In this document: positions 24,315-56,959 of the stretch, one piece after another | Position numbering within the stretch: the first letter of the stretch is position 1 | How the letters are laid out: each line of letters starts with the position of its first letter | Virus record (IMG/VR): IMGVR_UViG_3300043410_001471 | Coordinates: 181,437 to 245,436 of that record | Strand: one strand, 5' to 3' | Length of the DNA stretch: 64,000 nucleotides | The notes under the pieces: generated by a model | The model's database searches: none | What the model saw: the letters and a program-made list of their open reading frames with translations, nothing else | What the model was told of the DNA's origin: nothing | Made by a program: the position numbers and the translations under genes

Positions 24315-24995
24315 ATGAGTAATTTAATTATTTTTGGTGATTCATTTTCAACTCATTTTACAACAGATGATTCTGTTAAGATAGAAGAAAGTTGGCCACA
24401 ATTACTTTCCAATAAATTAAATATGAATGTAATAAATCATTCATTAGTAGGAGGATGTAATGGAGAAATATTAAATAAATTTTTTAAAGAATATCAATGT
24501 ATTAAAAATAATGATATTGTCATTTTAGAAATTGGATTTTTTAATAGATTGTTGGACCATTTTAAAAATACAACAATACATTTAGAATACGATGATAGGT
24601 TTGATGAATTGGATTTTGAATTTTTCAGTAGAAAAGTATTGGATATGGATGAATACATACGACAGGATATAATAAAATATGGATTCATTTGTGAATATTT
24701 GAAGCAAAAAGGTAATAAATTTTACATATGGTGTTTGGATAGAGAACTATCATCTAAGAATGAACCATATGCACATTCACAATTTCATATATCACTTATA
24801 AAACAATTTGAATCAAATTTAATAACATTTAATGGCAAATATAGTTTAATGGATGAGGTAATAGAAAAAACACCTAAATATTGGGTAAATAATTCTGATA
24901 AACATTTCAATAAAACTGGCCATCAATTTTTTTTTCAATATTTATATGATATAATAATGTCTAAAATAGAAAAAGAAAATAAAAAAATAATATGA
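24315..24995 (+). CDS. SGNH-hydrolase-like protein
   Basis: FGDSFS, GGCN, SDKH (DxH). Confidence 0.65.
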   Translation: MSNLIIFGDSFSTHFTTDDSVKIEESWPQLLSNKLNMNVINHSLVGGCNGEILNKFFKEYQCIKNNDIVILEIGFFNRLLDHFKNTTIHLEYDDRFDELDFEFFSRKVLDMDEYIRQDIIKYGFICEYLKQKGNKFYIWCLDRELSSKNEPYAHSQFHISLIKQFESNLITFNGKYSLMDEVIEKTPKYWVNNSDKHFNKTGHQFFFQYLYDIIMSKIEKENKKII

Positions 24996-25369
24996 AATTC
25001 GAAGTAACTAATCCAAAGGCGTGGAAAGCTGTAAATGAAAAAAACATTCCAATGTCTCATAAAATTAAAGTATATGAGAAATTAGGAGGAGCATATCGTT
25101 TAGGTGAAAATGGGGGTGAGCAGGTATTTAACAAAATGACAGAATTGTTAAAACATAAAATAAATGAAGGACCTGAAACACAAGACCACGAAGTATCCAT
25201 GGCAGGTGGTCAATTGGATGATATTATAAGAAACGCAACCGAACTAAAAGGTAAGGTTGGTGAACAAGAAATGAATTTACCTGGTTGGATTCAAGACCAC
25301 ATATCTCAAGCTCAAAATTTTATTAATCAAGCTAATACTGGCTTTCATAAATTAGATGGAGGTGAATAA
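24992..25369 (+). CDS. Hypothetical, possibly virion-associated (DHEVSMA motif)
   Basis: INEG then DHEVSMA; ATATTTATA motif 46 nt upstream. Confidence 0.6.
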   Translation: MKFEVTNPKAWKAVNEKNIPMSHKIKVYEKLGGAYRLGENGGEQVFNKMTELLKHKINEGPETQDHEVSMAGGQLDDIIRNATELKGKVGEQEMNLPGWIQDHISQAQNFINQANTGFHKLDGGE

Positions 25370-25370
25370 T

Positions 25371-25685
25371 ATGGATAATTTATATACAGTCTTAATATCA
25401 ATTGTGACAGTATTGGGTTCAGCAGGAGCTTTTAGATACTATGAAAAAAGACAGATTCATAAAGAAAGAGATGAAGATTTCATCCGTCACGATTGTAAAG
25501 ATAGAATCGCTAAATTAGAAGCTCTATTGGAATCATCTGCAAAAGAAAAAGATGACCTTCGTAATATGGTATTGGCACTTACAAAAGAAGTGGCAGCATT
25601 ATCAGTTAAGGTTGAATTCCTTACAAGAGAAAACGAAGAACTTCATAAAAAGACAAAAACAAAAAAGTCATTATTGAATGGTTAA
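25371..25685 (+). CDS. Membrane-anchored coiled-coil protein
   Basis: N-terminal hydrophobic helix followed by heptad pattern. Confidence 0.7.
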   Translation: MDNLYTVLISIVTVLGSAGAFRYYEKRQIHKERDEDFIRHDCKDRIAKLEALLESSAKEKDDLRNMVLALTKEVAALSVKVEFLTRENEELHKKTKTKKSLLNG

Positions 25686-26520
25686 TAACTTTACATCGGG
25701 TATGTGGAATGGTATGAAAGTGGAATTCGGAAAAGTTTATTCCGGATTAAATACTTTTGCATTTAGACCATTGCAAGAAGCGGGTGAAAAGAAATTGAGA
25801 ATATTTGATTTTGATGATACATTAGTTAAAACAAAATCACACATATACATCACACATAAAGATGGTAAAAAATCTAAACTAACACCTGGTGAATATGCAA
25901 TATACGAACCAAAAGATGGTGACCAATTTGATTTTTCCGATTTTGAAAAGGTAAAACAACCACAAGAAATCAAGGGTGTTACGAGATTACTTAAAAATAT
26001 AGTAAGAGTAGGTGGTTCAGAAATCGTAATATTAACAGCAAGGAGCGCTTATAAACCAATTAAGGATTACTTATCCGATATTGGATTAGATAAGTTATAT
26101 GTGGTGGCATTAGCCGATTCTGACCCACAAAAGAAAGCAGACTGGATAGAGAGTAAAATAAAGAGTGGAGTAACGGATGTATTCTTCATAGATGATTCAC
26201 ATAAGAATGTATCAGCAGTTCAAGCTTTATCTAAAAAATATCCAAACATATCATTAAAGGTAAGACATGTTCAGCACGATATACCAACACCACCAAAACA
26301 AAATGATGATATGAAAACTCAATCAAAACAAAAAGATGTAACTAAACCAACATCAACAAAAGGAAATGATATGAGTTTGAAATCATTATTACCAAAGGAT
26401 TTGGATAAGAAGATTAAGAATCCAGAAACGGGTAAAATGATTAAATTAAAAACAGCATTAGGATACGAAAAAGATACAAAAGCATATAAAGCAGCACAAT
26501 TTGCATTAAAACAAAAATAG
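25678..26520 (+). CDS. HAD-superfamily hydrolase with C-terminal basic module
   Basis: FDFDDTL, ILTAR, FIDDS. Confidence 0.8.
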   Translation: MVNNFTSGMWNGMKVEFGKVYSGLNTFAFRPLQEAGEKKLRIFDFDDTLVKTKSHIYITHKDGKKSKLTPGEYAIYEPKDGDQFDFSDFEKVKQPQEIKGVTRLLKNIVRVGGSEIVILTARSAYKPIKDYLSDIGLDKLYVVALADSDPQKKADWIESKIKSGVTDVFFIDDSHKNVSAVQALSKKYPNISLKVRHVQHDIPTPPKQNDDMKTQSKQKDVTKPTSTKGNDMSLKSLLPKDLDKKIKNPETGKMIKLKTALGYEKDTKAYKAAQFALKQK

Positions 26521-26522
26521 TT

Positions 26523-26909
26523 ATGATTTACCTTTTAACGGGTCAACCTGGGAGTGGTAAAACTACTTTAGGAAAAAAGTTACAAATTTGGTTACAAACG
26601 GATAAAAAAAATTGGCGTAAATCCGTATTCCACATAGATGAACATCAAACAACACACCCTATTGAAGTTGCAAAATATTTGGATAAATGTGGTAATGATG
26701 TTGTAATAAGTTTTGTATTTCCCAATAGAAAAATAAGAGAAAAATTTAAATCCGAAAATAAAGTACAGGAAATCTATTGTCATACTAAAAAAATGAGAAC
26801 GGATTCAATTGTTACTGATTACGAACCACCAATACAATTTTTTGTAGATTTGGATACATCGGATACACCCGATAATACTTTTACAAAATTAATAAAATTG
26901 TTATTATAA
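26523..26909 (+). CDS. Short P-loop kinase (APS kinase/CysC-like)
   Basis: LTGQPGSGKTT, YEPP.. Confidence 0.65.
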   Translation: MIYLLTGQPGSGKTTLGKKLQIWLQTDKKNWRKSVFHIDEHQTTHPIEVAKYLDKCGNDVVISFVFPNRKIREKFKSENKVQEIYCHTKKMRTDSIVTDYEPPIQFFVDLDTSDTPDNTFTKLIKLLL

Positions 26910-27694: not shown

Positions 27695-27727
27695 TATACT
27701 TATTAGTATAATCAAATAGTTATTAGT

Positions 27728-29848: not shown

Positions 29849-32800
29849 ATGAAAAAAGTGATTTTATCGCTTCTCCTTTCAGTATCAGCTTTTGTAGGAT
29901 TTGGACAAGTAACCACTTCCTCAATTTCAGGTGTTGTGAAGAATGAGAAAAACGAAGTGTTGGTTGGAGCAACAATCCAAGCAGTACACACTCCAACTGG
30001 TACGAAGTATTCTACATCTACCAATAAGTTGGGTAGTTATGTGTTACCGGCGGTTAGAGTAGGAGGACCTTACACAATTCAAGCAACATTTGTTGGTACG
30101 AAGAAAGACGAGGTTACAGATGTTAATACCCAATTAGGTACTACATCAAATGTGAATTTTTTATTAGTTGATGAGAACAAAACCTTAAAAGAGGTTGTTG
30201 TAGTTTCTACTCGAAATAACATTATATCGAGAGAAAGAACAGGTGCATCTCAACAATTCACTCGTAGAGATTTACAAAACATCCCAATTACGGGAGCAAG
30301 AACAATCGATGGTATTACAAAGTACAATCCAAACGGAAACGGAAACTCATTCGGAGCACAAGATTCTCGTTTGAATAACTTTACAATTGATGGTTCTCAA
30401 TTCAATAATGGATTCGGTTTAGGTTCATCAGCACAAGCGGGTGGTAGAACCGGAGCATCGGCAATTTCTTTAGATGCTATTGAGCAACTTCAGGTTAATA
30501 TTGCACCTTTTGATATTCGTCAGAGTGGGTTTACTGGCGCAGGTATCAATGCAGTAACAAGAAGTGGTACAAACGAAATTGAAGGTAGTGTTTATCAAAC
30601 ACAAAGAGATAATAGTTCTACATATGTAGGTGATAACGCAAGAGGAACAAAAGTAACTGCATCTAAATTTGATGAGAAAGTACAAGGTTTCCGTTTAGGT
30701 GCACCAATCATTAAGAACAAATTGTTCATCTTTGGTAACTACGAACAAATTGAGAAAACTGAACCAGGTACAACTTGGATTTCAACAGGTTCTCCATTGA
30801 CAGGTTCACAAATTAGTAGACCAACTTATACACAATTATCAGACTTATCTAAATTTATGCAAGATAAGTTTAATTACACAACAGGTCCATTCGAAGGATA
30901 TTCTAACACAAACGCATCTAAGAAATTCTTAGTTCGTATGGATTGGAACATCAACGACAAACATAAATTAACGGCTCGTTATGTGCATCACGATTCTGAA
31001 GCAGAGATTAATATTTCAAACTCTACATCAGCAGGATTCGGTAATAGAACAACTTCAGCATTAGCAATGAGTTTCCAAAATAGTGGTTATATCATTATGG
31101 ATAACACTCGTTCTTATGTATTGGAATTAAACTCTAAATTATCAAATACTTTACATAATAACTTAATCGTTGGTTATGATAAGCAAATTGAGGATAGAGC
31201 ATATCGTTCTCAAATGTTCCCAACAATCGATATTAAGGATGGTGCAACAACTCTTACATCAGTAGGTTTTGACCCATTCACTCCAGGAAATAAGTTAGAT
31301 TACAATACTTTCCACATTACAAACAACTTAACAAAGTACGCTGATAAGCACACTTTGACATTAGGTTTTAATTATGAGAAATACCAATCTAATAACTTAT
31401 TCTTCCCAGCATCTAATGGTGTTTATATTTTCAATAGTTTAAGTGATTTCTACACTGCAGCTAATCAATCATTAGCAAATGGTGGAGCACCTTCAACATT
31501 AGTTCCAGCTCGTTTCCAATTCCGTTATTCGGCATTACCGGGAGCAGTTGAACCAATGCAAACTTTGAAAACTGATAGATTAGATGTTTACGGACAAGAT
31601 GAGTTCCAAGCAACTGAAAACTTAAAGTTCACTTTTGGTTTAAGAGCAGCAATCATCTCATTCGAACAAACTGCATTGGAAAATCCAGCAGTAACCGCAA
31701 TGACATTTGCAGGTGGATTGAAGTTTAACACAGGTGTATTACCAAAAACACAAACACTTTTCGAACCTCGTTTCGGATTTAACCATGATGTATTTGGTGA
31801 TAGAAAAACACAAGTTAGAGGTGGTACGGGTATCTTCACTGGTCGTCCTCCATATGTGTTTATCTCAAACCAAGTGGGTAACAATGGTGTATTGACAGGG
31901 TATATTGATGTGAGTGGTTCTGCGGCAGCTAAATATGGTTTCACTGCAGACCCTAATAAATACTTTATCCCATCAACTCCAACTTTACCATCTACATTTG
32001 ATTTAGCATTTACGGAAGAGAACTATAAGTTCCCACAAGTTTGGAAATCAAACATCGCAGTTGACCAAAAGTTACCATTCGGTTTCATAGGTACTGCTGA
32101 ATATATCCAAAATGTAAACTTAAACGCAGTTCATTATTACAACGCAAACTTTGGTGTTCCAACTGGCGTATTCGCAGGTGTTGATAAGAGAGCAAAGTAT
32201 GCAGGAACTGATGCAGGTGTTAGAGTAAATGGTAATGTTTCAAACGCAATCGTATTAGCTAATTCAGATAATACTCGTTTCAGTTCATTAACATTGAAAT
32301 TAGAATATCCTTACCAAAAAGGTATCTTCGGTTCATTTGCATGGACAGTATCGGATGCTAAAGACTTTATGAGCGCGGGTTCAATCGCTTCAGGTAGTTG
32401 GACAGGTGCTAGAAGTATCAATGGTAACAACGAATTAAACTTAGCTAATTCTGATAACTTATCTCCAAATCGTTTAGTTGGTTTGTTAGGATATAGATTA
32501 GAATATGGTAAAGGTTTAGGTGGAGCAACTTCATTCACATTAGGTTATGTAGGAAATCAGGGTAATCCATTCTCTTACACAATTGGTGGTGATATGAATG
32601 GTGATAGAATTGCAGGTAACGAATTAATCTTCGTTCCATCACAAATGAGTGATATCAAATTCGCACCATTGACAGTTGGTACAAGAACTTATACTGAAGC
32701 TGAACAACAAGCAGCATTTTGGTCTTACATCGAGCAAGACGAATACTTATCTACTCGTAGAGGTCAATATGCTGAAAGAAATGGTTCATTCTTACCAATG

Positions 32801-33121
32801 TTACATAGATTCGACTTATCAGTTGTACAAGATATCTATGTAAAGGTTAAAGGTAAAAAGAATACAATTCAAATCAGAGCAGATATCTTAAACTTTGGTA
32901 ACTTATTGAACAATGAGTGGGGTGTTTCTCAAAGAGCAACTATCCCAACTATCTTAAACTATTCAACTACTAATTCGGCAGGTGAACCAGTTTATAAGTT
33001 AGCAACTCAAAAATTAGCAGATGGTTCTACTATCTTAGCTAGAGATACTTATCAATATAATTCATCAGTATTTGATGTATGGTCAGCACAATTAGGAATT
33101 CGTTATATTTTTGGAAAATAA
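29849..33121 (+). CDS. TonB-dependent outer-membrane receptor (Oar/SusC-like, N-terminal carboxypeptidase-regulatory-like domain)
   Basis: Signal peptide (FG|Q), plug motif NNFTIDG...GGINAVTRSG, C-terminal QLGIRYIF. Confidence 0.92.
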   Translation: MKKVILSLLLSVSAFVGFGQVTTSSISGVVKNEKNEVLVGATIQAVHTPTGTKYSTSTNKLGSYVLPAVRVGGPYTIQATFVGTKKDEVTDVNTQLGTTSNVNFLLVDENKTLKEVVVVSTRNNIISRERTGASQQFTRRDLQNIPITGARTIDGITKYNPNGNGNSFGAQDSRLNNFTIDGSQFNNGFGLGSSAQAGGRTGASAISLDAIEQLQVNIAPFDIRQSGFTGAGINAVTRSGTNEIEGSVYQTQRDNSSTYVGDNARGTKVTASKFDEKVQGFRLGAPIIKNKLFIFGNYEQIEKTEPGTTWISTGSPLTGSQISRPTYTQLSDLSKFMQDKFNYTTGPFEGYSNTNASKKFLVRMDWNINDKHKLTARYVHHDSEAEINISNSTSAGFGNRTTSALAMSFQNSGYIIMDNTRSYVLELNSKLSNTLHNNLIVGYDKQIEDRAYRSQMFPTIDIKDGATTLTSVGFDPFTPGNKLDYNTFHITNNLTKYADKHTLTLGFNYEKYQSNNLFFPASNGVYIFNSLSDFYTAANQSLANGGAPSTLVPARFQFRYSALPGAVEPMQTLKTDRLDVYGQDEFQATENLKFTFGLRAAIISFEQTALENPAVTAMTFAGGLKFNTGVLPKTQTLFEPRFGFNHDVFGDRKTQVRGGTGIFTGRPPYVFISNQVGNNGVLTGYIDVSGSAAAKYGFTADPNKYFIPSTPTLPSTFDLAFTEENYKFPQVWKSNIAVDQKLPFGFIGTAEYIQNVNLNAVHYYNANFGVPTGVFAGVDKRAKYAGTDAGVRVNGNVSNAIVLANSDNTRFSSLTLKLEYPYQKGIFGSFAWTVSDAKDFMSAGSIASGSWTGARSINGNNELNLANSDNLSPNRLVGLLGYRLEYGKGLGGATSFTLGYVGNQGNPFSYTIGGDMNGDRIAGNELIFVPSQMSDIKFAPLTVGTRTYTEAEQQAAFWSYIEQDEYLSTRRGQYAERNGSFLPMLHRFDLSVVQDIYVKVKGKKNTIQIRADILNFGNLLNNEWGVSQRATIPTILNYSTTNSAGEPVYKLATQKLADGSTILARDTYQYNSSVFDVWSAQLGIRYIFGK

Positions 33122-33186: not shown

Positions 33187-34854
<1,668 letters not shown>

Positions 34855-36898: not shown

Positions 36899-37864
36899 AT
36901 GATTAGATTAAAATCCTTATTAAAGGAAGAAGAAGTTGTAAAAAACAAAAAAACAGGTAATGTTTATGTGGTTCAAACTTTTGACCCATCTAAACACGAT
37001 AAACCAAGCTCCGTTGAAATTGAAAAAGCTAAAGCAGCTAATAATGGGCAACTTCCTAAAGGAGAACCTCAACCTATTCAAACTCCAAAAAATACTGCAC
37101 CTACAAAATCAGGTCAAAAATTGGGTGGTAGTGATTTCAAATCATCAGCCGAAACTCCAAAAGGAAATGGCATCCCTAAGTTAAAGGATTTGATGCCGGG
37201 TGCAGATTTTTCTAACAAACCACTATCTCAAGTAACTCCCGTAGAAAGACAACAAATTTCTACTATTATTGATAAGTTAGCAGAATTAGGAAATCAGGCA
37301 AAACAAAGTGGTGAAAAAGCACCAAATTTTAATTTATGTAAGGTTTCAATTCCAGGTACTAACTTATATTGCGATGGTAACAAAGGTATTCCTCGTGAGG
37401 ATATGCCACAATTCAAAGGAACACCTGAACCAGGTTCTCCAGCCGATAAGTTACCAAAAGATAAAAATGGAGAAGCTGATACTGAAGAATTCTTTAAACA
37501 AATGTTAGAGAAAGAAGGTATAAATGTATCTAATCCTGCAGCAGTTCCACCTGATAGATTAAAAGCAACTCAATCTGAATTGGTTGGTGTTAAAGTAGCA
37601 GGTATGAGTAAAGCATTGGAAGAAAACCCACAACATCCAGCAATCACCGCACCTATATATGTTTCAAATGATGGATATGTGTTAGATGGACATCATAGAT
37701 GGGCAGCAGTTGTAGCATACAATGCGGCACATCCTAAAGAACAAATTCCAATGAATGTTAGAGTGATTGATGAACCGATTGTACCATTAGTACATCGTTC
37801 AAATAAATTTGCGGAAGCAATTGGTATTAAAGCAAAAGCCGCTGATACCGGCGCAAGAGGATAA
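36899..37864 (+). CDS. ParB/sulfiredoxin-like domain protein with LKSLLxE N-terminus
   Basis: PIYVSNDGYVLDGHHRWAA. Confidence 0.75.
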   Translation: MIRLKSLLKEEEVVKNKKTGNVYVVQTFDPSKHDKPSSVEIEKAKAANNGQLPKGEPQPIQTPKNTAPTKSGQKLGGSDFKSSAETPKGNGIPKLKDLMPGADFSNKPLSQVTPVERQQISTIIDKLAELGNQAKQSGEKAPNFNLCKVSIPGTNLYCDGNKGIPREDMPQFKGTPEPGSPADKLPKDKNGEADTEEFFKQMLEKEGINVSNPAAVPPDRLKATQSELVGVKVAGMSKALEENPQHPAITAPIYVSNDGYVLDGHHRWAAVVAYNAAHPKEQIPMNVRVIDEPIVPLVHRSNKFAEAIGIKAKAADTGARG

Positions 37865-40369: not shown

Positions 40370-40573
40370 ATGTTAGGACTTAAAATTAGAATAGTATTAA
40401 ATGTATTATTCATCACATCTATCATAGGATTAGCAATATCCTATATCACAATCTTATTACCACAAATACCTGATTTAAACTTTTTAGAATCAGTTGGTTT
40501 ATATTGTATGTTATTACCTGTAAATGAGTTTTTAAAATCTATAATGGAGGGAGATGATGAACAACATAGATAA
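40370..40573 (+). CDS. Small two-helix membrane protein
   Basis: Two hydrophobic stretches; promoter at 40340. Confidence 0.65.
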   Translation: MLGLKIRIVLNVLFITSIIGLAISYITILLPQIPDLNFLESVGLYCMLLPVNEFLKSIMEGDDEQHR

Positions 40574-43987: not shown

Positions 43988-43988
43988 T

Positions 43989-46283
43989 ATGAAACACTTA
44001 TTAGTTACATTATTCTTATTCATATCATTTTTAGGGTTCGGACAGAGTGTATCTGCTCCGGACTCTAAATCGTTTATACCATCCACAACTGCACAAGATG
44101 CAAGTGGATTTGTATTGAGTGGATTCAATTCTACATCAACTCTATTAGCATCAATCAGTTTAGTAGAATACCCATCAGGTACTACATTCTATCTAACTAC
44201 CACAACAGGTTTAACTGCGGCAAGTGGATTTACATTGTCGGGAAATAAAACTCGATTAGTTGTAACGGGAACGATGGCTAATATCAATACGGCATTGGCA
44301 TCCCTAAAAGTAAATACTGGTTCGGTAGTAGGAAATGTTAAATTATCAGTAGCAGCAACAGTCAATCCAATCGGTTACTATTATAATGGTGTAAACGGAC
44401 ACTTTTACAAACCTGTATATCCTGGAACAACTTATACTAATGCAAGAGCAATATCTTTAACAACAACATTCAAAGGACAACAGGGATATTTGGTAACAAT
44501 TACATCAGCTTCGGAAGATGCTTTTATTCAAGCCAATGTTCCTCAAACCAATATATGGTTCGCCGCAACGGATGAAGTAATAGATGGAACTTGGGTAATA
44601 GATGCTGGTCCTGAAAAGGGAACTGTAATGAAAACAAGGAATGGTAATCTTAATGGAAACATTCCAGGTGTATATAACAACTGGGCAAGTGGTGAACCAA
44701 ATGGTAGTAATCATACTGAGGATTATGCGGTAACAAAATGGAATGGTAATTTATGGAACGATTTAAATAACAATTGGAATAATGCGTATGTAATTGAATA
44801 TGGAACTTGGAGTAATCCAGATGACCAAACATTTACCGAATTTTATACCAATTCAGTAAATCACTCAAATGGCTCAGTATTAAGAACTCAATTTAATTTT
44901 GATTTTGGTGGGAATGTAGATGAAACTAAATTCTCAGCAAAAGCAAACACTTATGTAAATAATGTATGGGGAACAACAAATTCAACTGCAAGAGCATTAA
45001 GTGGGTTAGGTAAAGTTGATATTACAAGTGATTTGGATACTGTTAAAATAAGTGGTAATGGTGTAAAAGCATCAACAACTGCTGGATATGCTGAATGGTG
45101 TGTAATATACGAATATGAAGTAACAAACCAAAGATATAGAGTTGGAATCGATAGTAGAGAGGTTACAGGTATTTTATCTGACCCATCAACAATCAGTAGT
45201 TTACAATTATTTGATTTATGGAATGGACCAGTTACCTATGGTAGTTATGACTCGAATGGTTGGACAGAGGTTTATATCTATACCACAACACCATTGAATT
45301 TCGCTGGTTCATCTTATACATCTAATATTAGAAATGGTGGTTCATATTATGCATTAACTGCAGAATTTACATTTTCACCAATTCAAAGTTACAAACAACA
45401 TGGAATTGAAATTGTTGCGAATTCACAAACTGAATTAAACACTTTATATACGAATATTGTAACAGTATCAGATGTTTATTTAGCATTTAAAGAATTATCG
45501 AATGGTGGTATATTGGGAAACCAAAGTGGATTGGAATTTGGAAATGGTATCCAATATATGAATGCGGATGTGGATGGTAATGGTTCATTTAATGAAGCAG
45601 ATACTTACAAACTATTACAACATTTGAGTGGGATTGCACCACTAACACAATATTCAGCATTAACTTATTTGATGAAATTATATAACAAATCAGATTATGA
45701 TGTAATAACAAAATCAAATTGGAATACACAATTAAATTCAACAAGAAGTTTGATTCCATTTAATTTGAACACTGGTGCATTGAATAACACTTACAATATA
45801 AATGTAACATGGGTAGGTGATGTAAACCTTTCACATTCAGCACAACAAACCCAAAGTAGTGTTGCAACTAATTCAATTAGAACTATGAGTTTGACAACTA
45901 ATTCGGTTTCAAATATCATAAACGCAGAATTGATGGGCGAAAATGTGGGTGGTAAGTTAGTTGTAACAATTACATTAGACCCGTTACAACAAGAAGTGGT
46001 TGGAACTCAATTTAATTTGAATTATGATAATACTGCTCTTAAATTTGAAAAAGTAGATTTTGTAACAAAGGGTAATCCTACCAATTTTGGAACTGATAAG
46101 GGAACATCTATAATATTTGGTTCTTTAATTACGGATGGTTCAACTACATTGGATAAAACGACTCAATACAAAATAACATTTGCACCACTAATGATGCTAG
46201 GTGATAATTTGGGATTAACATCTATATCACTAACTGATGCGGTTAATAAGAATGGTACACAATTAAAAGTAAAGTTAAACTAA
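43989..46283 (+). CDS. Secreted protein: C-type lectin + dockerin/EF-hand-like + cohesin-like domains
   Basis: Signal peptide (GFG|Q); YLVTITS..WF..W..YNNWASGEPN..WNDL lectin motif; DVDGNGSFNEAD; GTQFNLNYD. Confidence 0.75.
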   Translation: MKHLLVTLFLFISFLGFGQSVSAPDSKSFIPSTTAQDASGFVLSGFNSTSTLLASISLVEYPSGTTFYLTTTTGLTAASGFTLSGNKTRLVVTGTMANINTALASLKVNTGSVVGNVKLSVAATVNPIGYYYNGVNGHFYKPVYPGTTYTNARAISLTTTFKGQQGYLVTITSASEDAFIQANVPQTNIWFAATDEVIDGTWVIDAGPEKGTVMKTRNGNLNGNIPGVYNNWASGEPNGSNHTEDYAVTKWNGNLWNDLNNNWNNAYVIEYGTWSNPDDQTFTEFYTNSVNHSNGSVLRTQFNFDFGGNVDETKFSAKANTYVNNVWGTTNSTARALSGLGKVDITSDLDTVKISGNGVKASTTAGYAEWCVIYEYEVTNQRYRVGIDSREVTGILSDPSTISSLQLFDLWNGPVTYGSYDSNGWTEVYIYTTTPLNFAGSSYTSNIRNGGSYYALTAEFTFSPIQSYKQHGIEIVANSQTELNTLYTNIVTVSDVYLAFKELSNGGILGNQSGLEFGNGIQYMNADVDGNGSFNEADTYKLLQHLSGIAPLTQYSALTYLMKLYNKSDYDVITKSNWNTQLNSTRSLIPFNLNTGALNNTYNINVTWVGDVNLSHSAQQTQSSVATNSIRTMSLTTNSVSNIINAELMGENVGGKLVVTITLDPLQQEVVGTQFNLNYDNTALKFEKVDFVTKGNPTNFGTDKGTSIIFGSLITDGSTTLDKTTQYKITFAPLMMLGDNLGLTSISLTDAVNKNGTQLKVKLN

Positions 46284-46624
46284 TGAAGAAGATAATATTA
46301 ATATCGTTAATTTTGTTAGTAGGATGTACTAAACCAGAATTACCAACACCAGTATTGCCTGTTGAAAAAATATTTAATGCAACTGAAAGTTCAGTAACAA
46401 ATGGACAATCTATACACTTTGATTTACCATCGGTAGGAGTGTATACATTAACTTTAATAGATAAAGAAAGTGGGCAAGTTGTAAGTAGAGAAAGATTTAA
46501 TGGTATAAGTGGTGAAAATGTAAAAAAGATTTATACGAAATCATTACAAAGTAGATATTTATATTTGTTATTGGAAGATGTTACTAAAAAAGAATTAGGT
46601 AAAACAACAATAATAATAAACTAA
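46283..46624 (+). CDS. Lipoprotein with T9SS-CTD-like Ig domain
   Basis: Lipobox LLVG|C; C-terminal ~70-aa beta-sandwich pattern. Confidence 0.6.
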   Translation: MKKIILISLILLVGCTKPELPTPVLPVEKIFNATESSVTNGQSIHFDLPSVGVYTLTLIDKESGQVVSRERFNGISGENVKKIYTKSLQSRYLYLLLEDVTKKELGKTTIIIN

Positions 46625-46993
46625 ATGAAAAAATTAATTTTAACATTTGCGATAGCAGCTTTATTGGTAGGATGTAGTAAAGAAGATATCATCCCAACAC
46701 CTCAATCGGTATCGGAAGATTTGAAGATTGCAAGTTCGGTGGGTATCAAAGTACAATCACACTTTGTAACATCGGAAGTTGCAATGAATGTAAAAACTGA
46801 AACTGCTCAATCAGTAACGATTAAAATATTCGATATTGGAAATAGAGTAGTATCAAAAGAAACAATGAATGTAGTAGCAGGTGATAATGTACTTAAAGTA
46901 TATACATCAGCATTACCATCATCTGCATATAGAATAGGATTATTCGATGCAAGTGGTAGACAATTAGGAATAACAGATTTTAACAAATTATAA
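46625..46993 (+). CDS. Lipoprotein with T9SS type-A sorting-domain-like C-terminus
   Basis: Lipobox LLVG|C-SKED; IKIFDIGNRVV..G.N..LPSSAY. Confidence 0.7.
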   Translation: MKKLILTFAIAALLVGCSKEDIIPTPQSVSEDLKIASSVGIKVQSHFVTSEVAMNVKTETAQSVTIKIFDIGNRVVSKETMNVVAGDNVLKVYTSALPSSAYRIGLFDASGRQLGITDFNKL

Positions 46994-47006
46994 AAAACAA
47001 TTTACA

Positions 47007-47327
47007 ATGGCAGAAGAACAAGAAGAAAAAGGTGGTACTTCAATTAAAAGTATCTTAATCGGTTTAGTGAGTACTATCACATTAGGAGTTGGTGGTTTCA
47101 TTACAAACAAATTAACAGGTGGTGAAGAAGAAAAACCTGCAGTACAACAAGCTGCACCTGTTATCAATATTCAAAACACTCAAAATCAATCTCAATCGGC
47201 AGGTGGTAAGACTGTAATCATTAAAGAGAAAGCAGTTGGTGGTGGAAATGCTCAACCAGCACAACCTCAACCAAAGCCTAAGAAGAAAGAAGGCGATGAG
47301 TTCAAAGAAGAAGCACCAAAGTGGTAA
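47007..47327 (+). CDS. Single-TM protein with Gln/Pro-rich tail
   Basis: Hydrophobic segment at residues ~14-33. Confidence 0.7.
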   Translation: MAEEQEEKGGTSIKSILIGLVSTITLGVGGFITNKLTGGEEEKPAVQQAAPVINIQNTQNQSQSAGGKTVIIKEKAVGGGNAQPAQPQPKPKKKEGDEFKEEAPKW

Positions 47328-47416
47328 TTTATAAATTAGGCGTAGTTGTAGTTATGTTAATGTTATTAGCAAGTGCAATCTATGTAGGATTAAAACAACA
47401 AAAAGAAAATGAGTAA
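47321..47416 (+). CDS. 31-aa single-TM microprotein, absent from the ORF track
   Basis: GTG start; VIYKLGVVVVMLMLLASAIYVGLKQQKENE; overlaps both neighbours. Confidence 0.45.
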   Translation: MVIYKLGVVVVMLMLLASAIYVGLKQQKENE

Positions 47417-48014
47417 TCAACAACCGCCAAGCGGATTTAAGGATTTATTAAATTCAATGATGTCCAGAAGATGGTACATCACTGCGTTAGTATTGGGTTC
47501 ATTCATATTAATCATCGGAGGTATTTTCGGTGCAATTACATCGAATACGGCAGCATCGGCAGAATGGAAAGAACTTCTATTATTAATGTTGGGTGCTTTC
47601 ATTGGTTCTTATGGTAAAATCATTGACTATTGGTTTAGTGATACCGATAAGGATAAAATGTTAGTTCAGAAAATGGATGAAGAAGATGGTACATCGTTAA
47701 GTAATACGGCGGATATGCCAGATACTCCAATCGTTCCTATGAGTGTAGCACCATTAGTATTACCAAATACCGAAGAATCAGTAGTATCACTACCAAAAAC
47801 TGAAGAAAAACAAACCGAAAAGAAAGGTGTTGAAATTGATGAAGATGGCGATGGCGTAATGGATGGTTTAGATTTCGATGGTGATGGTAAGATTGATGAA
47901 TACTTCGCACATAGACAATGTGAGCATGTATGGGGAGATTTGGATGGCGATGGTGAAGAAGAATGTTTAAAATGTGGTAAAATCAGAGATGATGATGCCG
48001 AAATGGTAGGATAA
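47409..48014 (+). CDS. Two-TM protein with DxDGDG (Ca-binding-like) repeats
   Basis: Two TM helices; DEDGDG, DFDGDG, DLDGDG; CEH..CLKC. Confidence 0.7.
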   Translation: MSNQQPPSGFKDLLNSMMSRRWYITALVLGSFILIIGGIFGAITSNTAASAEWKELLLLMLGAFIGSYGKIIDYWFSDTDKDKMLVQKMDEEDGTSLSNTADMPDTPIVPMSVAPLVLPNTEESVVSLPKTEEKQTEKKGVEIDEDGDGVMDGLDFDGDGKIDEYFAHRQCEHVWGDLDGDGEEECLKCGKIRDDDAEMVG

Positions 48015-48051
48015 ATAGGTTACATAGTATTAACAATTTAAATGTAAAACT

Positions 48052-48309
48052 ATGACTTTTAAAGAATGGGTAATTGATTTATTCAAAGATGAAAGAGGAG
48101 CAATATCAGTAAAACCTGTAATTGCATTCGTTGGAGCATTATTCTTATGTGGAACAATGTTAGTGAACTCTTTCTCACATGGTGATATCAAACCAGCAGC
48201 AGAATTGGTAAACGCAGTAATGGTAATCACAGCAATCGGAATGGGAGCTGATACATTAGATAAGTTTACACATAAAAAGAGTGAACCTAAAGAAGAAGAA
48301 TTAGGATAA
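48052..48309 (+). CDS. Small two-TM membrane protein (holin-like)
   Basis: Two hydrophobic helices, charged C-terminus. Confidence 0.6.
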   Translation: MTFKEWVIDLFKDERGAISVKPVIAFVGALFLCGTMLVNSFSHGDIKPAAELVNAVMVITAIGMGADTLDKFTHKKSEPKEEELG

Positions 48310-48318
48310 TAATTGAAA

Positions 48319-48346
48319 AGGGAGAACATAGTTTCTCCCTTTTTTT
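48319..48346 (+). terminator. Rho-independent terminator
   Basis: AGGGAGAA/TTCTCCCT stem + T-run. Confidence 0.8.
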
Positions 48347-48380
48347 ATACTTATACATAAACGAACAAACTCATTTATGT

Positions 48381-49103
48381 ATGAAAAATTTATTAGTATT
48401 ATTAAGTTTCTTTTTGTTAAGCAGTGTTGCGGGTGTTGCTCAAACAATAGGAAGCACTAAAACAGAGCAGTACAAAGCATCCTTCGAAACAAAATCGGAC
48501 ATTAGTCAATTTTTAAATTATGAAGGAAAGCAAATTCCGATTCAAATCCTTAAATGTGGTATTGGTGATGAAGTTTATGACCAATATCCGGAGCTCAAGG
48601 AAAAGAGAGTTGGTTTGGGTGTGGCTAATATCACGCTTGAATATTTGGATAATCTTAACCGATTTACATTTACGGAAGATAAAACTGAAATTAAAAACAG
48701 AATGGTTAAGCAGTTTCAGGCATCTCAAGCAGGCATTTCGGAAGATAAATTGGATGGTAGAGGAAAAATCCGTTTAGCACATTACTTTGTTGAAATAGAA
48801 GTATATGACTATTCCGTTTCCGAAGATGAAACAATCAATTTAAAAGATGGTATCAAAGATAATATGGTAACTCGTTTAGGTTTACAGGTTAGATTCACAA
48901 ACGCAGAGAATGGTACTATTATCGCAGCATCTGGTTTAGGTGAAGCAACTACAAAAAGAGAATTAACTCTATTATCAGATGCAACTATTGACCCTATAAA
49001 ATTCAACCAATCAACTATTAGTATTGCAACAAAGAAAGCATTGGATATCGCTTGTGCAAATATATTAGGTAAAATGGTTAAAAAGGGAGTATTTGAAAAA
49101 TAA
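48381..49103 (+). CDS. CsgG/HfaB-family protein
   Basis: Signal peptide (GVA|Q); LGLQVRFTNAENGTII..SGLGEA CsgG-like strand. Confidence 0.65.
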   Translation: MKNLLVLLSFFLLSSVAGVAQTIGSTKTEQYKASFETKSDISQFLNYEGKQIPIQILKCGIGDEVYDQYPELKEKRVGLGVANITLEYLDNLNRFTFTEDKTEIKNRMVKQFQASQAGISEDKLDGRGKIRLAHYFVEIEVYDYSVSEDETINLKDGIKDNMVTRLGLQVRFTNAENGTIIAASGLGEATTKRELTLLSDATIDPIKFNQSTISIATKKALDIACANILGKMVKKGVFEK

Positions 49104-49108
49104 TTATT

Positions 49109-49327
49109 ATGAAATATATTACATTCCTTATATTCTTATTTTTAGTTAGTTGTACGCCTGTTAGAAAAGTAAATGTTTATAGCAAACACAATTATTATCA
49201 AAGACATAGAACCAACACATATACATCTCCAACTTGGATTCCAGGTAGAGGTATCATATTGGAAACACATATACATAAGTTACCCAAAAGAAGTTACGCC
49301 CCTAAAGTTAGAAGAGGAAGGCATTAA
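49109..49327 (+). CDS. Small basic lipoprotein
   Basis: Lipobox FLVS|C. Confidence 0.65.
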   Translation: MKYITFLIFLFLVSCTPVRKVNVYSKHNYYQRHRTNTYTSPTWIPGRGIILETHIHKLPKRSYAPKVRRGRH

Positions 49328-50868
49328 TGAAAAAATGGTTAGTAAGTTTATCAATAATGGTTATGTTCATATTTGCTCAAGAAGCGAAAGGGCAAACCTA
49401 TACCCAAACATTCGTAGATAAATGTAGTGGACAAATCAAAACGGCAACAACTACTATGGTTAATGGTAACGCCGTTGTTTCCTTTTATGACCAAGTTAAA
49501 GTATTTACTCCATTGGAAGTACAAAGTGGAGCAGTTAAACTTTGGTTAAACGCAACATATTTAGCATATTCAACAATGGGTTGTCCTACTAACATAGTAG
49601 TTCAGCAAACAGTCCAACAAACTGTAAATAACGCAGTATCACAGGCAGCATCATCTGCGGCAACTCAAGCGGCTAGTGCGGCAGCAAGTTCAGCAGCTTC
49701 ATCAGCTGCGAGTTCAGCCGCATCAACTGCAGCAAGTTCAGCCGCAAGTTCGGCGGCATCTTCATCGGCATCTACGGCAGCAAGTAATAGTGCAAGTTCA
49801 GCGGCATCATCATCCGCTAGTTCTGCATCATCAACTGCGGCAAGTAGTGGTGCAACGGCATCTACATCATCAACTGCTTCAACTCCACCACCAGCAAGTA
49901 GTAGTTCATCATCTACGAATTCATCGAGTAGCAGTTCATCGAATAATAGTAATTCATCATCATCTTCATCCGAAACTAAATCGGAAAGTAGTAGTTCATC
50001 ATCATCTTCATCTGAATCAAAATCAGAGACTAAATCGGAAACAAAGAGTGAATCTAAATCCGAATCAAAATCTGAAAGTAAGAGTGAGGAAAAGAAAGAG
50101 GAATCTAAATCAGAATCTAAAAAGGAAGAGAAAAAAGAAGAATCTAAAAAAGAAGAAAAGAAAGAGGAGAAGAAGGAAGAGAAAAAAGAGGAAAAGAAAC
50201 AAAAGGCTCAAAATATGAATCCGTTGTTAATAGCATCGGATTTAACAACCGCTGAAGACCAGGATGGTACATACAATGCAATCGCATCGGTAGGTATTAG
50301 TAGAAGTTCAATGGCTGGAGATGTAACCTATTCCCTAAACTCTATGATATGGAGTTCATTAGACCAATTCGCATTAAGTAGTGGTATAACTAAAATGAAC
50401 TTTGAAGGTGGTAAGTTATCATCTATCAATTCATACTCATTGACATCGGCATATCTTAAAGGTAGTTGGATGGGATTGATGGGGTATACCTATATCAAAC
50501 CACATCCTAAATTGGGAGTATATGGATACAATGTGGGAGCAGTGATGTTAATGATGCCAGGTAGTAAACAAAAATGGGATGTATCCCTATCTACATCGGC
50601 AGTAGCATTTTGGACCAAACCATTTCAGTATAGTAAGAAATTAACACTTTCACCGCAAGTATTCGCAATGTATTCTCCAATTGGATATAATACATTTACC
50701 GGAAATACTGCAGTAGGTAGACACTTTGGATTTTTGGTAGGTTCTTCGGTTGATTATAAAATCAGTAGAAGATTTGGATTCTCATTTAACTATAAGTTGA
50801 ATATGAATACACAACCTGGTCAGAAATTTACAAGTAACTTTTTGATTGGAACAAGAATGATGCTTTAA
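49327..50868 (+). CDS. Secreted protein with Ser/Ala and Glu/Lys low-complexity stalk and beta-barrel-like C-terminus
   Basis: Signal peptide (AKG|Q); ASSAA and KKEE repeats; amphipathic beta-strands in the last ~210 aa. Confidence 0.75.
   Translation: MKKWLVSLSIMVMFIFAQEAKGQTYTQTFVDKCSGQIKTATTTMVNGNAVVSFYDQVKVFTPLEVQSGAVKLWLNATYLAYSTMGCPTNIVVQQTVQQTVNNAVSQAASSAATQAASAAASSAASSAASSAASTAASSAASSAASSSASTAASNSASSAASSSASSASSTAASSGATASTSSTASTPPPASSSSSSTNSSSSSSSNNSNSSSSSSETKSESSSSSSSSSESKSETKSETKSESKSESKSESKSEEKKEESKSESKKEEKKEESKKEEKKEEKKEEKKEEKKQKAQNMNPLLIASDLTTAEDQDGTYNAIASVGISRSSMAGDVTYSLNSMIWSSLDQFALSSGITKMNFEGGKLSSINSYSLTSAYLKGSWMGLMGYTYIKPHPKLGVYGYNVGAVMLMMPGSKQKWDVSLSTSAVAFWTKPFQYSKKLTLSPQVFAMYSPIGYNTFTGNTAVGRHFGFLVGSSVDYKISRRFGFSFNYKLNMNTQPGQKFTSNFLIGTRMML
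49640..50200 (+). repeat. Coding low-complexity tandem repeats (ASSAA / SES(K) / KKEE)
   Basis: Degenerate codon-level repeats inside the 49327 ORF. Confidence 0.85.
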
Positions 50869-51122: not shown

Positions 51123-51758
51123 ATGAAGAGAATTTTATCCATTGTTATGCTATTGGTTATAGCAACAACATTAAACGCACAAGATGTAGTACAATTGAAA
51201 CATCTTAATTACACATCACATTTCAGTAAATCAAAAAAATACCCTGTAATGGTAGAATGGTGGGAAACTAAAATCAAAGTTGGATGCGCAACTCCACTTC
51301 CTCGTAAGGATAACTTTAAGCCAGACCCATTATTACCAAAAGAAACTAACATCGGACAAGATTATGTAAATAGTGGATACGATAGAGGTCATTTAATGCC
51401 AGCAAAATCAAACCAATGTCAAACAACATTTGTACAAGATGAGTGTTTCTATTATTCTAATATGGCTGCACAAACACATAGATTAAATGCAGGAGATTGG
51501 AAATCATTGGAAACTCTAACAAGAGAATGGGCAGTAGTACAAGATTCGGTGCATGTGTGGGCTGGAAATGTTGGTGAGATTAAAAAAATAGGTACAACAT
51601 CAGTTCCAAAACAATGTTGGAAAGTAGTACATATTAAGAAAACAAATGAGTGGTTCTTTTACTTATTTGAGAATGATTTATCAGCACCAGATGGTATCAA
51701 TAACAATAAGGTGTTAAGAGAAGATATAGAGAAATTGACAGGTTTTAAATTCCAATAG
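51123..51758 (+). CDS. Secreted DNA/RNA non-specific endonuclease (NucA/EndA family)
   Basis: Signal peptide (LNA|Q); YDRGHL, SNMAAQ..LN..W. Confidence 0.92.
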   Translation: MKRILSIVMLLVIATTLNAQDVVQLKHLNYTSHFSKSKKYPVMVEWWETKIKVGCATPLPRKDNFKPDPLLPKETNIGQDYVNSGYDRGHLMPAKSNQCQTTFVQDECFYYSNMAAQTHRLNAGDWKSLETLTREWAVVQDSVHVWAGNVGEIKKIGTTSVPKQCWKVVHIKKTNEWFFYLFENDLSAPDGINNNKVLREDIEKLTGFKFQ

Positions 51759-53739: not shown

Positions 53740-53765
53740 TTCCTTAAACTTTAAAATCTAAAATT

Positions 53766-53975: not shown

Positions 53976-54057
53976 AATAATTTAAAAATAAATGACAAAA
54001 AGCTTGGCATTATCAAGCTTTTTTCGTACATTTACTAAGTAATAAGAGATAAACATT

Positions 54058-54438
54058 ATGAAAAAAGAACAAGGATACAAAACAATTTTTAGTGATATCG
54101 ATGGGACTCTAATTGAGCAAGTTAGTTTCGAAGAGTTAGACCCAAATGTGGTAAATGTTTTACCAGGTGTTAAAGAGAAAATGAATGAATGGTACAATGC
54201 CGGACATTACATCGTTTTAACTACTGCAAGACCAGAACATTTGAGAGAGATTACTGAAATTCAAATGAACAAAGCAGGTATCAGATTTGACCAATTGGTT
54301 ATGGGTATCGGTAGAGAGGAACGAATTTTAATCAATAACAACTCTTCAAAAGACCCACAACGAAACCGAGCATTTGGAGTGCCAGTTGCTAGAGACGGTG
54401 GGTTTAATCAAATTGATTTTGAATCTGTTGGTTTATAA
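54058..54438 (+). CDS. Cap-less HAD phosphatase
   Basis: FSDIDGTL, LTTAR. Confidence 0.8.
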   Translation: MKKEQGYKTIFSDIDGTLIEQVSFEELDPNVVNVLPGVKEKMNEWYNAGHYIVLTTARPEHLREITEIQMNKAGIRFDQLVMGIGREERILINNNSSKDPQRNRAFGVPVARDGGFNQIDFESVGL

Positions 54439-54465
54439 TTAAAATATAATATATATAACAACAAT

Positions 54466-54839
54466 GGGGATGCCCGGTATTGACAGGTATGAAGTGTTAG
54501 TACAATTGATGCAAGCAGGATTAGATGGAAATCCTTAAACACCTATCGAACAATAAACGCAGTAGAATTATCTACAATGACCTTCGAAGATGCTATGGCA
54601 TTCGTTGGTGCTGATTTAGCAGTAGCTGCCTAATCTCTCCCGCACACATCGTGGGACTTGAAATAGAATGTGAACCCAGGTGGATACCAATTGAACCCGA
54701 AATCGAATTGGAAACATTAATGATAACGAATGTATAAATCTTTATCTATTTTGTCAGTTAAGAAAAACTGACTAAGCTTGTGAATGAGGTTTATTAAACC
54801 ATATTTTGGACGAGGGTTCGACTCCCTCCATCTCCACCA
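54466..54839 (+). ncRNA. ssrA: tmRNA; predicted tag (A)AVELSTMTFEDAMAFVGADLAVAA*
   Basis: GGGGATG/CATCTCC-ACCA acceptor with G3.U70, TTGAC after the 5' end, GGGTTCGACTCCC T-arm, tag ORF 54559-54633 ending AVAA. Confidence 0.93.
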
Positions 54840-54866
54840 TTTTGAAAAAAATTTATACTTATTAGT

Positions 54867-55121
54867 ATGATAAAACTAACGGATTTAATAAGTGAAGCAA
54901 CTACATCTTGGTCAAGAATGATGCAAGGTGTTAGAGCTGGTGGTTCAGGCCCTTGGTCTTTAGTTGCAATTGAGTACAACAAAGTAGTTGCTCAAAAGAA
55001 TAACATTAAAGATAAGAATCTTTTACCTGCTCACTTCGAAGCAATGAGAAGAGAAAATCCAAAAGCTAAAATCCATATCGAAGATGCGGGTGGACAAGTA
55101 GTTTGGAATGAAAAAAAATAA
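54867..55121 (+). CDS. Small protein with MIKLTDLISE N-terminus
   Basis: ORF after ATACTTATTAGTA motif. Confidence 0.75.
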   Translation: MIKLTDLISEATTSWSRMMQGVRAGGSGPWSLVAIEYNKVVAQKNNIKDKNLLPAHFEAMRRENPKAKIHIEDAGGQVVWNEKK

Positions 55122-55125
55122 TACA

Positions 55126-55509
55126 ATGAAACTAAAAGACTTATTAAACGAAAGTGTAGTTGCCAAAGATGGTAAAGTAACATCAAGTGGTAATCTTATC
55201 GGTTATTATGAATTCGATAGAGATTCAGATTCTTTTTGGGTAGATGATGTAAAGAAAGGCAAAGGTCAATTATCATTTGAAACCAAAAAGGAAGTTGAAG
55301 ATTACTTTAAGAAGAATGAAAAAGATGCTATCAAACATTTAGGAAAATTGAGAGAATCCATTCCAGAAGCAACAATGCATGATATGACAAGAGAAAAGGC
55401 ATTGGATAATCTTAAAGATGTAATTCATAATATCAGACCTTATAGTAAGGAAGTAGTTAAACATTGTGAAGCAGCTATTGCAATCATAGAGAAATTTGAA
55501 AAACGATAA
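55126..55509 (+). CDS. Small protein with MKLKDLLNE N-terminus
   Basis: ATG 55126 preferred; second LRES site internally. Confidence 0.75.
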   Translation: MKLKDLLNESVVAKDGKVTSSGNLIGYYEFDRDSDSFWVDDVKKGKGQLSFETKKEVEDYFKKNEKDAIKHLGKLRESIPEATMHDMTREKALDNLKDVIHNIRPYSKEVVKHCEAAIAIIEKFEKR

Positions 55510-56261
55510 TGATTAAGTTAAAAGATTTATTAAATTCAAACATATTAAATGAGGGTGTAGATGACCCGGGTATTCTTAAATGTGTATTTTTAGCAGGAGG
55601 ACCTGGTAGTGGTAAATCGAAGGTAGCTGCAGATTTGTTTGGTGTACAAGGTATAGCAACATTTTCGGCAAGTGGATTGAAGATGGTGAATTCTGATATC
55701 GCATTTGAAGCTCAATTAAAAAAGAGTGGTATTGACCCAAAAGATTTAGGTAAAATTGAAAAGGAAGACCCTGCATTATGGGATTTCATTACTAAATCAA
55801 AAGAAGGTCCGAGAGAAACGGGAAAAGGAATTACTCAAAAAACCAAAGCATTTTATGAAGAGGGTAGATTGGGTATGATTATAGATGGTACGGGTGATGA
55901 TGTGGCTAAAATCAGAAAGCAAAAAGCAAGAGCAGAAGAGTTAGGATACGATACATATATGGTATTTGTGAATACATCATTGGAAATAGCTCAGGCTCGT
56001 AACGCTAAAAGAAGTAGAAGTTTGCCAGAATCATTGGTTAATGATATATGGAAAGAATGTCAGCACAATTTAGGAGCATTTCAAACCCTATTTAGTGGTA
56101 ATTTCCGTATCATAGATAACACAAAGGATGGTAACAATATAACATCAAGCATTCAAAAAGCAGTTGATGGATTCATAAGAGAACCATTGAGAAATGCAGT
56201 TGGTAAGAAATGGGTAACGAATGCAAGAATTTTAAAAAACGCAAATATAATTAAGAAATGA
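55509..56261 (+). CDS. Zeta-toxin/AAA_33-like P-loop kinase with MIKLKDLL N-terminus
   Basis: LAGGPGSGKS, MIIDGT, ARNAKRSR. Confidence 0.75.
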   Translation: MIKLKDLLNSNILNEGVDDPGILKCVFLAGGPGSGKSKVAADLFGVQGIATFSASGLKMVNSDIAFEAQLKKSGIDPKDLGKIEKEDPALWDFITKSKEGPRETGKGITQKTKAFYEEGRLGMIIDGTGDDVAKIRKQKARAEELGYDTYMVFVNTSLEIAQARNAKRSRSLPESLVNDIWKECQHNLGAFQTLFSGNFRIIDNTKDGNNITSSIQKAVDGFIREPLRNAVGKKWVTNARILKNANIIKK

Positions 56262-56959
56262 TAAAGGCAGGTAGATACGATTTAAACGAAGCATCATTAG
56301 GTAGAATATATCAACATGTGGTTTCAAATCCTAAAATGAAAAATTGGGGAGTAGTAACTGCAAGTAGAGGTGAATTGACACCTGCTGAAAACAAACAAAG
56401 AAACAAAGAGTTAGAAAACGATTTGCGTAAATTGGGATACGGGTTTGTTCATGTAGATGGTATGTGGCAGGAATGTAGACAACCAAATACGGAATATAAG
56501 GATTGTCCAGAAGATATGAAAGTACCAACTGAAGAGAAATCTTTATTTGTACCTAACATATCACAACAACATATTCAGGCATTAGGTAAGAAGTATCAAC
56601 AAGATAGTGTATTATTTGCGGATGAAGCAACTAAAGCCAAAGGTGAAGCAACATTTATTGATTCAAAATCAGGTGAAGCATTCAACATTGGTAAGTTTGC
56701 ACCTGGCAAAATAGCACAAGGTTATTCTAAAATGAAAGGTGGTAAAGTATTCACATTTGAACCACAAGAAGAGCCTAAAGAAGAACCAAAGGATGATATG
56801 AAGTTGAAATCTTTATTACCTAAAGGAATATTGGATAAAACTGTTATGAATCCTGATACAGGTAAAATGATTAAGGTTAAATCGGCGTTGAAATACGATG
56901 ATGACCATAAGGTTAAGCAGGCTGCAAAATCAATGATTAAAACTGCTTTACATAAATAA
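56258..56959 (+). CDS. Conserved-looking phage protein with C-terminal basic module
   Basis: LNEASLGR; TASR..EN..RN..L..DLR..GYG; LGKKYQQDSVL. Confidence 0.7.
   Translation: MIKAGRYDLNEASLGRIYQHVVSNPKMKNWGVVTASRGELTPAENKQRNKELENDLRKLGYGFVHVDGMWQECRQPNTEYKDCPEDMKVPTEEKSLFVPNISQQHIQALGKKYQQDSVLFADEATKAKGEATFIDSKSGEAFNIGKFAPGKIAQGYSKMKGGKVFTFEPQEEPKEEPKDDMKLKSLLPKGILDKTVMNPDTGKMIKVKSALKYDDDHKVKQAAKSMIKTALHK

Follow-up and report, generated by a model that had tools for sequence, protein, structure and literature searches.

The capsid-targeting sequence (CTS) of phage T4 is the only feature common to the internal proteins that T4 injects to disarm the defences of its host, and it is also a handle for loading foreign proteins into heads. 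It reads MKTYQEFIAE, comprises about ten residues and is cut once; the protease responsible, gp21, cleaves after the Glu of I/LxE. Suppressor genetics of the internal protein IPIII assigned residues 4 and 7 to targeting and residues 8 and 10 to processing (PMC9026906). CTS-like leaders for varied cargo are established in T4 relatives. Here we analysed 64,000 nucleotides of the IMG/VR virus record IMGVR_UViG_3300043410_001471 (positions 181,437 to 245,436; this whole stretch is called the window, and its own numbering is used unless genome positions are given). The window is the final 64 kb of a 245,436-bp phage genome, and several of its genes, for otherwise unrelated proteins, begin with one short leader, M-I-K/R-L-x-D/S-L-L/I-x-E. 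We believe that this leader is a T4-type CTS with a new consensus, used by a distant T4-like lineage, and would give this reading a probability of roughly 0.8.

The resemblance to the T4 CTS, which is carried by IPI, IPII, IPIII and Alt and removed by gp21, lies in its design. Both are N-terminal peptides of about ten residues on unrelated proteins, and both have hydrophobic residues at positions 4 and 7, Ile or Leu at 8 and Glu at 10. The letters differ (MIKLKDLLxE against MKTYQEFIAE), whereas length and functional positions are common to the two. As in T4, a gp21-family protease and a presumed gp22-like cleavable scaffold are encoded alongside, the genes for the cargo vary and lie partly in clusters, and several of the mature products are basic. 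In contrast to T4, the range of cargo is much wider (56 families among the matches surveyed), and some of it has a second ΦxE a few residues on. A further parallel is provided by the ejection proteins of giant phiKZ/SPN3US-like phages, whose propeptides are cut after Glu by a gp21-related protease and are thought to direct the proteins to the prohead (PMC5694885). However, those propeptides are 79-127 residues long or longer and share no short consensus, and the genome described here, with its T4-type portal, presumed scaffold and gp23, belongs to another lineage.

Four genes of the window, all on the + strand, carry the leader in the form M-(I)-K/R-L-x-D/S-L-L/I-x-E. The 321-residue product of gene 36899-37864 starts MIRLKSLLKEE, with a ten-residue leader, MIRLKSLLKE, at 36899..36928; its orthologues in L020 and L064 start MIKLKDLL[RK]E. 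The 84-residue product of gene 54867-55121 starts MIKLTDLISEA (leader MIKLTDLISE, ten residues, 54867..54896), and the 127-residue product of gene 55126-55509 starts MKLKDLLNES (leader MKLKDLLNE, nine residues, 55126..55152). Position 55126 is an internal ATG of an open reading frame (ORF) that spans 55108-55509; since the orthologue in a close relative, L038, begins exactly there and has no upstream start, 55126 rather than 55108 is likely to be the start. The fourth gene, 55509-56261, encodes a predicted P-loop kinase of 250 residues and starts MIKLKDLLNSNILNEG. In its 15-residue leader, MIKLKDLLNSNILNE (55509..55553), the first site has been lost (S10), and the conserved junction ahead of the kinase core is E15|G16. 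Directly upstream of this cluster, 428 bp (54439-54866) hold no convincing ORF, a gap that is absent in L038.

These four starts had been named in an original prediction made from the letters of the window without database searches, and all four are present. The proteins had also been described there as otherwise unrelated, and BLASTP indeed finds the mature parts of five tagged proteins to be mutually unrelated. The extension of the leader to three further genes fared less well. LNEA in the 233-residue product of gene 56258-56959 does lie near the N-terminus, at residues 9-12, and we regard the divergent leader MIKAGRYDLNE (11 residues, 56258..56290, + strand) as a plausible relative; [IL]-[ND]-E is kept in 120 of the 120 close homologues listed, all of which are at least 88% identical and uninformative on distant N-termini. 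INEG in the 125-residue product of 24992 occupies residues 57-60 and is not an N-terminal tag. LQEA in the product of gene 25678-26520 stands at residues 32-35, just ahead of the HAD core, where it could end a long propeptide: a possible 34-residue segment ending LQE|A before the HAD-like core (25678..25779, + strand) is a weak candidate. A homologue of this protein in L114 starts MIKLKDLLED. The proposal that HAD proteins are among the tagged cargo does not hold for this genome, where they are without an N-terminal tag.

The shared start stands out from the rest of the predicted proteome. A scoring matrix built from four seed sequences only was used to scan 76,415 positions, a genome-wide scan that the original prediction had itself proposed, and the best match outside the seeds was at residue 3 of the gene at genome 126915-127352 (score 27.5 versus 21.0 for the runner-up), that is, the N-terminus of a gene in the head module. 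When N-termini were compared all against all, ten pairs scored at least 28, versus 1.27 expected and a maximum of five in 300 position-preserving (column) shuffles; six of the ten fall within the tag set, and most of the others join paralogous enzymes. Synonymous codons vary between copies of the tag (CGT/AGA/AAA, CTA/TTA, ATA/ATT), and therefore selection appears to act on the peptide and not on the DNA.

Beyond this genome, a degenerate DNA pattern for M-I-K-L/F-K-D-L/F-L/F matched at least 120 IMG/VR contigs. The matches listed yielded a set of 100 non-redundant ORFs of at least 30 residues that start MIKLKDLL, and it is to this set that the following figures refer. Residue 10, on which the pattern imposes nothing, is Glu in 91 of the 100, versus a background of 5.9% (binomial p 8.5e-101). 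Conservation stops there, residues 9 and 11 onward being variable. The ORFs begin a median of five codons past an in-frame stop, and their mature parts form 56 families unrelated by BLASTP. Tagged genes also occur in runs, with five in 13.7 kb of L083 and four in tandem in L028. Of 96 tagged proteins from viral contigs, only a few could be assigned by Pfam; these are zeta/AAA_33 kinases, NUDIX and PAP2 proteins, a lysozyme, one 2H/Acb1-like phosphoesterase and two zincin peptidases.

The tag is restricted to viral (T4-like) sequence. In 596 Gb of bacterial and archaeal genomes the same pattern gave mostly short or internal chance matches; 25 ORFs qualified, and only 4 of the 25 had Glu10. All four are on small contigs of metagenome-assembled genomes, and two of them, L159 and L173, match families of the viral contigs L124 and L083. 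Peptidase_S77 was found on 10 of 18 tag-bearing viral contigs tested, most of which are only 22-72% complete, being fragments of large genomes; an eleventh contig breaks off at a T4 portal. A search with PF07068 (Gp23) on five contigs matched nowhere and is uninformative because the controls, too, were without a match; a query with the capsid protein found nothing on these contigs either.

Whole-genome scans with a stricter pattern found 14 tagged genes in G001 (296 kb), three in G003 and two in Flavobacterium phage immuto, in which the top six-frame match was the N-terminus of gp231. In immuto, gp231 starts MIKLIDLLTE|S and gp082 MRLLELLRE|A. The G003 orthologues of the kinase and of an ORF between terminase and portal are tagged too, outside the strict pattern. 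Across G000, G001, G003 and immuto, L4, L7, L/I8 and E10 are conserved, and residues 5, 6 and 9 vary. In G001 (L083, ~207.5-216.9 kb) about ten tandem paralogues start MIKLK[DEQ][IL]LLE and continue with ...IF[VI]PRR[ML][ED]DR, an expanded tagged family of this 296-kb phage. A literature search for MIKLKDLL, MKLKDLL and IKLKDLL returned no match among the papers covered, and we found no paper reporting this consensus.

If the leader is a CTS, the genome should also encode the machinery of a T4-type head. The genome has direct terminal repeats and a GC content of 31.7%, its + strand carries nearly all genes, and its sequence places it in a distant T4-like lineage. A profile search located a prohead protease of the Peptidase_S77 family (PF03420, T4 gp21-type) at genome 126063-126653 (E 3e-30, 102 bits). 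Its catalytic His (ELDHP) and Ser (SSRGLGS) align with the T4 gp21 structure 5JBL, the catalytic residues of T4 gp21 being H85 and S140 (PMC12991175). The protease is apparently active, and it has LIE at residue 8, as T4 gp21 has at 9. The head module also encodes a T4-type portal. Between the protease and the capsid gene lies the gene for an acidic protein of 407 residues, which starts MANSKLLKE|A and has 13 [LI]xE sites; because the profile search gave no family match for it, its presumed identity as a gp22-like cleavable scaffold rests on position and composition. The gp23-type capsid protein has LLDE|A at residues 59/60, near the region that aligns with mature T4 gp23, and is 54% identical to that of immuto and ~30% identical to those of T4-like cyanophages.

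The gene picked out by the scan (genome 126915-127352) belongs to this module. It lies two genes downstream of the protease, beyond a short ORF of 84 residues, and reads MIRLKDLLSE from residue 3; contig G003 repeats the arrangement of protease and tagged gene. The ORF that separates terminase and portal has the N-terminus MRLLDLIPLKE|M. Homologues found elsewhere begin with MIKLKDLLTE|D or MKLSNIVKE|M, and in each case the same conserved domain follows immediately. Outside the window, a Dps-like/DUF5856 gene (PHROG 858, PF19174; genome 127353-127724, L002:9353-9724) lies between the tagged gene and that of the presumed scaffold; its product may be another internal head protein. In the related Microcystis phage Mel-JY01 the homologue of the tagged head-module gene starts MNKQRKQPSRR, without the tag, and adjoins a gene annotated in the head module as ribosomal protein S21 (L134:2845-3072). 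The T4 late-promoter word TATAAATA occurs in 15 copies on the + strand, none of them within 300 nt upstream of tagged or head genes, and a sigma-70/terminator scan of 54300-57200 gave nothing above shuffles.

For the kinase, the leader differs from lineage to lineage. The 55509 product scores above the cut-off with both AAA_33 (34.9 bits) and Zeta_toxin (30.7 bits). Its AF2 (AlphaFold 2) model has a predicted local distance difference test score (pLDDT) of 93; the core exceeds 90 from about residue 21, and the leader forms a low-confidence helix before it. The folds closest to the model are those of the C. thermocellum polynucleotide kinase, zeta toxin and the T4 polynucleotide kinase, so the model predicts a P-loop kinase of the polynucleotide-kinase/zeta group. 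The zeta-like kinase of the original prediction is thus borne out in fold and profile, with the proviso that polynucleotide kinases are structurally as close.

The kinase family comprises 2,058 cluster representatives. In other T4-like phages the orthologues have differing short leaders, all of which end in ΦxE right before a conserved G-[VI]-x-D-P-G-I: MIPFILKE|G in Pelagibacter phage HTVC008M, MKTFAELQE|G in Melnitz, MTTFKEYLLE|G in RsoM2USA and, resembling the T4 CTS, MKSFKDFTSLDE|A in Cronobacter phage leB. The E|G junction is found in 108 of 137 kinase representatives, including fusions in which the kinase is internal. Agrobacterium phage Atu_ph07 gp53 contains a homologous kinase (35% identity, E 1e-33), again with ΦxE|G (...VTE|G) before the kinase core; it differs from the 55509 product in being a multidomain protein of 779 residues with an N-terminus of its own, MKWNDLNE|A. 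In virions of that phage gp53 (87 kDa) is an abundant protein: it was detected with 31 unique peptides and 45.5% coverage, and the largest amount was in gel band 9, at the position of ~21-kDa proteins (PMC6102473, Table S5). A band so far below the full size fits a protein that is packaged and processed. The RsoM2USA kinase sits in a gene run, 258-254, all members of which have leader-like starts, and ORF257 of this run is one of ten abundant virion bands (PMC8504454).

In our model for the action of the leader, tagged proteins would bind the scaffolding core of the prohead via the tag late in infection, with hydrophobic residues 4 and 7 making the contact to the core. As the gp23-type shell forms, the tagged proteins would be enclosed. 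The gp21-type serine protease (genome 126063-126653) would then cut after Glu10 of L/I-x-E, and the mature proteins, several of them basic, would remain with the DNA inside the head and probably accompany it into the cell. We infer core binding and cleavage at Glu10 and, by analogy with T4, injection into the cell. The idea of a capsid-targeting signal, already put forward in the original prediction, is well supported by the protease, the presumed scaffold, gp23, the length of the tag, the boundary at Glu10, the agreement with the T4 positions and the Atu_ph07 orthologue in virions.

Several points weigh against this reading. Unlike the T4 CTS, the MIKLKDLLxE form is known from sequence alone. 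In G002, a tag-bearing contig of 207 kb rated 100% complete, no S77 protease, T4 portal or gp23-type capsid protein was found. Prediction of a complex between the protease and the 84-residue tagged protein gave no verdict either way. A tag-like M[KS]LKSLLPK that does not contain the Glu opens the C-terminal module of two proteins of this genome, and part of the motif may therefore serve another role. Finally, the E|G junction of the kinases could be a feature of the fold and not a cleavage site; since it may partly reflect the fold, we count it as supportive and not as decisive.

Could the tag have a different partner altogether? As a short linear motif, it might dock onto another hub of the phage or the host, for example a factory for replication or transcription, a membrane site or a chaperonin; it would then act neither as a capsid signal nor as a site of cleavage. 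No result here identifies the partner of the tag, similar strings occur inside proteins (residues 94-101 of the 36899 product and the C-terminal modules), and the apparently complete G002 shows no T4-type head genes, all of which would suit a docking motif. However, given that docking leaves unexplained why conservation ends at Glu10, why leaders are swapped in other T4-like lineages with ΦxE kept at the junction, why the most conserved tagged gene lies near the head protease, and why an orthologue is apparently processed in virions, we consider this explanation unlikely.

Selection might instead act at the level of the RNA, with A/U-rich first codons keeping the start region unstructured; a genome of 31.7% GC and the A/T-rich codons of the tag are in keeping with such an expression element. 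Yet the codons differ among the copies while the peptide is kept, in more than 50 gene families among the matches listed it is the amino acids Glu10 and Leu4, 7 and 8 that are conserved, and the tag is missing from most other genes of this genome, highly expressed structural genes among them, which together make an expression element very improbable. That the pattern arose by chance, or because a single gene start was recently duplicated among adjacent paralogues, is scarcely credible: three of the tagged genes are indeed adjacent (54867-56261), but their mature parts are unrelated, other copies lie ~18 kb away (36899) and ~110 kb upstream in the genome (126915), and the shuffle tests speak against chance, as do the survey of viral contigs and the bacterial control. 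We therefore favour the reading of the leader as a CTS.

Read as CTS-bearing cargo, the proteins of the window are varied. The 36899 protein consists of the leader, a VKNKKTGNVYVV module, a low-complexity linker and a C-terminal domain with DGHHR that bears a weak likeness to ParB/Srx. The ParB-like cargo announced earlier has this motif and weak profile matches in its favour, and the absence of a Pfam hit against it; PHROG 1033 was matched weakly (E 0.0058) and PHROG 2859, of unknown function, with E 2e-18. By tblastn, the protein matches large virion proteins, internal or structural, of Pseudomonas podophages, and the ParB/Srx-like domain is also present in such internal proteins. The VKNKKTGNVYVV..DP..H.KP module (36929-37060) recurs outside the window at genome 166272-166427 (L133), as residues ~56-107 of a 687-residue protein that starts MIPNFKEILLE, and is there again preceded by ΦxE (SFLNE|D); searches with this protein (genome 166107) gave no PHROG or Pfam match. 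By profile, the 56258 product belongs to the S-AdoMet lyase family (PF23780/DUF3293), and the products of 54867 and 55126 gave no family match. The mature 54867 product would have a mass of 8.3 kDa and an isoelectric point (pI) of 9.9, and the mature 55509, 56258 and HAD-like 25678 products have pI values of 9.2-9.5, versus a proteome median of 5.9, which recalls the basic internal proteins of T4.

Two of these proteins end in a module of about 50 residues that opens with the tag-like string. It reads MSLKSLLPK...NPETGKMIKLKTAL in the HAD-like 25678 protein (26371..26520, + strand) and MKLKSLLPK...NPDTGKMIKVKSAL in the S-adenosylmethionine (SAM)-lyase-like 56258 protein (56798..56959, + strand), where it follows an acidic/proline linker. 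The two copies match each other (tblastn E 2e-11) and share the consensus M[SK]LKSLLPK, then NP[DE]TGKMIK[VL]K[ST]AL. Searches of Pfam and the Atlas yielded no usable match for the module; Pfam gave only a weak hint of MvaT_DBD (E 0.11). The module could serve to tether the proteins to DNA or as a second route into the head.

A second CTS that is recognisable from DNA alone would let packaged proteins be listed from the metagenomes of abundant aquatic T4-like phages, and would help to find candidate anti-defence enzymes that act before phage gene expression. It could also yield protein-loading tools for phages of Bacteroidota and other non-enteric hosts. The grammar of targeting and cleavage (hydrophobic residues at 4 and 7, I/L at 8, Glu at 10) would then have been kept across very distant T4-like lineages while the letters drifted. 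Tentatively, we go one step further: MIKLKDLLxE may be a legible address tag for a T4-like branch that is large and uncultured, such that any ORF starting with it is delivered pre-made with the DNA, and the C-terminal module (LKSLLPK...NPxTGKxIK) a possible second, uncleaved route, for example through DNA binding. The label already marks more than 50 unrelated families, among them polynucleotide-kinase-like, NUDIX, PAP2, Acb1/2H-phosphoesterase-like, SAM-lyase-like and zincin peptidase-like proteins; if this reading is true, they would form a large, as yet untapped store of counter-defence proteins for the first minutes of infection.

The window contains several other genes of note. An outer-membrane beta-barrel protein of 1,090 residues (29849-33121), with a signal peptide and a CarboxypepD_reg domain, is TonB-dependent-receptor-like, which points to a Bacteroidota host and to possible remodelling of the host surface. 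It is followed by a GroEL-type chaperonin (33205-34854). Further along are an endolysin with peptidoglycan-binding and GH19 domains (38650-39498), a thymidylate synthase (40554-41624) and a secreted non-specific DNA/RNA endonuclease (51123-51758). A run of genes at 42335-50868 has signal-peptide or lipoprotein-like starts (42335, 43980, 46283, 46625, 48381 and 49327); the three of the run that were scanned (42335, 43980 and 49327) gave no Pfam match. At the right end of the genome, 23 tRNA genes (58271-63881) form a nearly full set, and it is this block that raises the GC content there to 41%.

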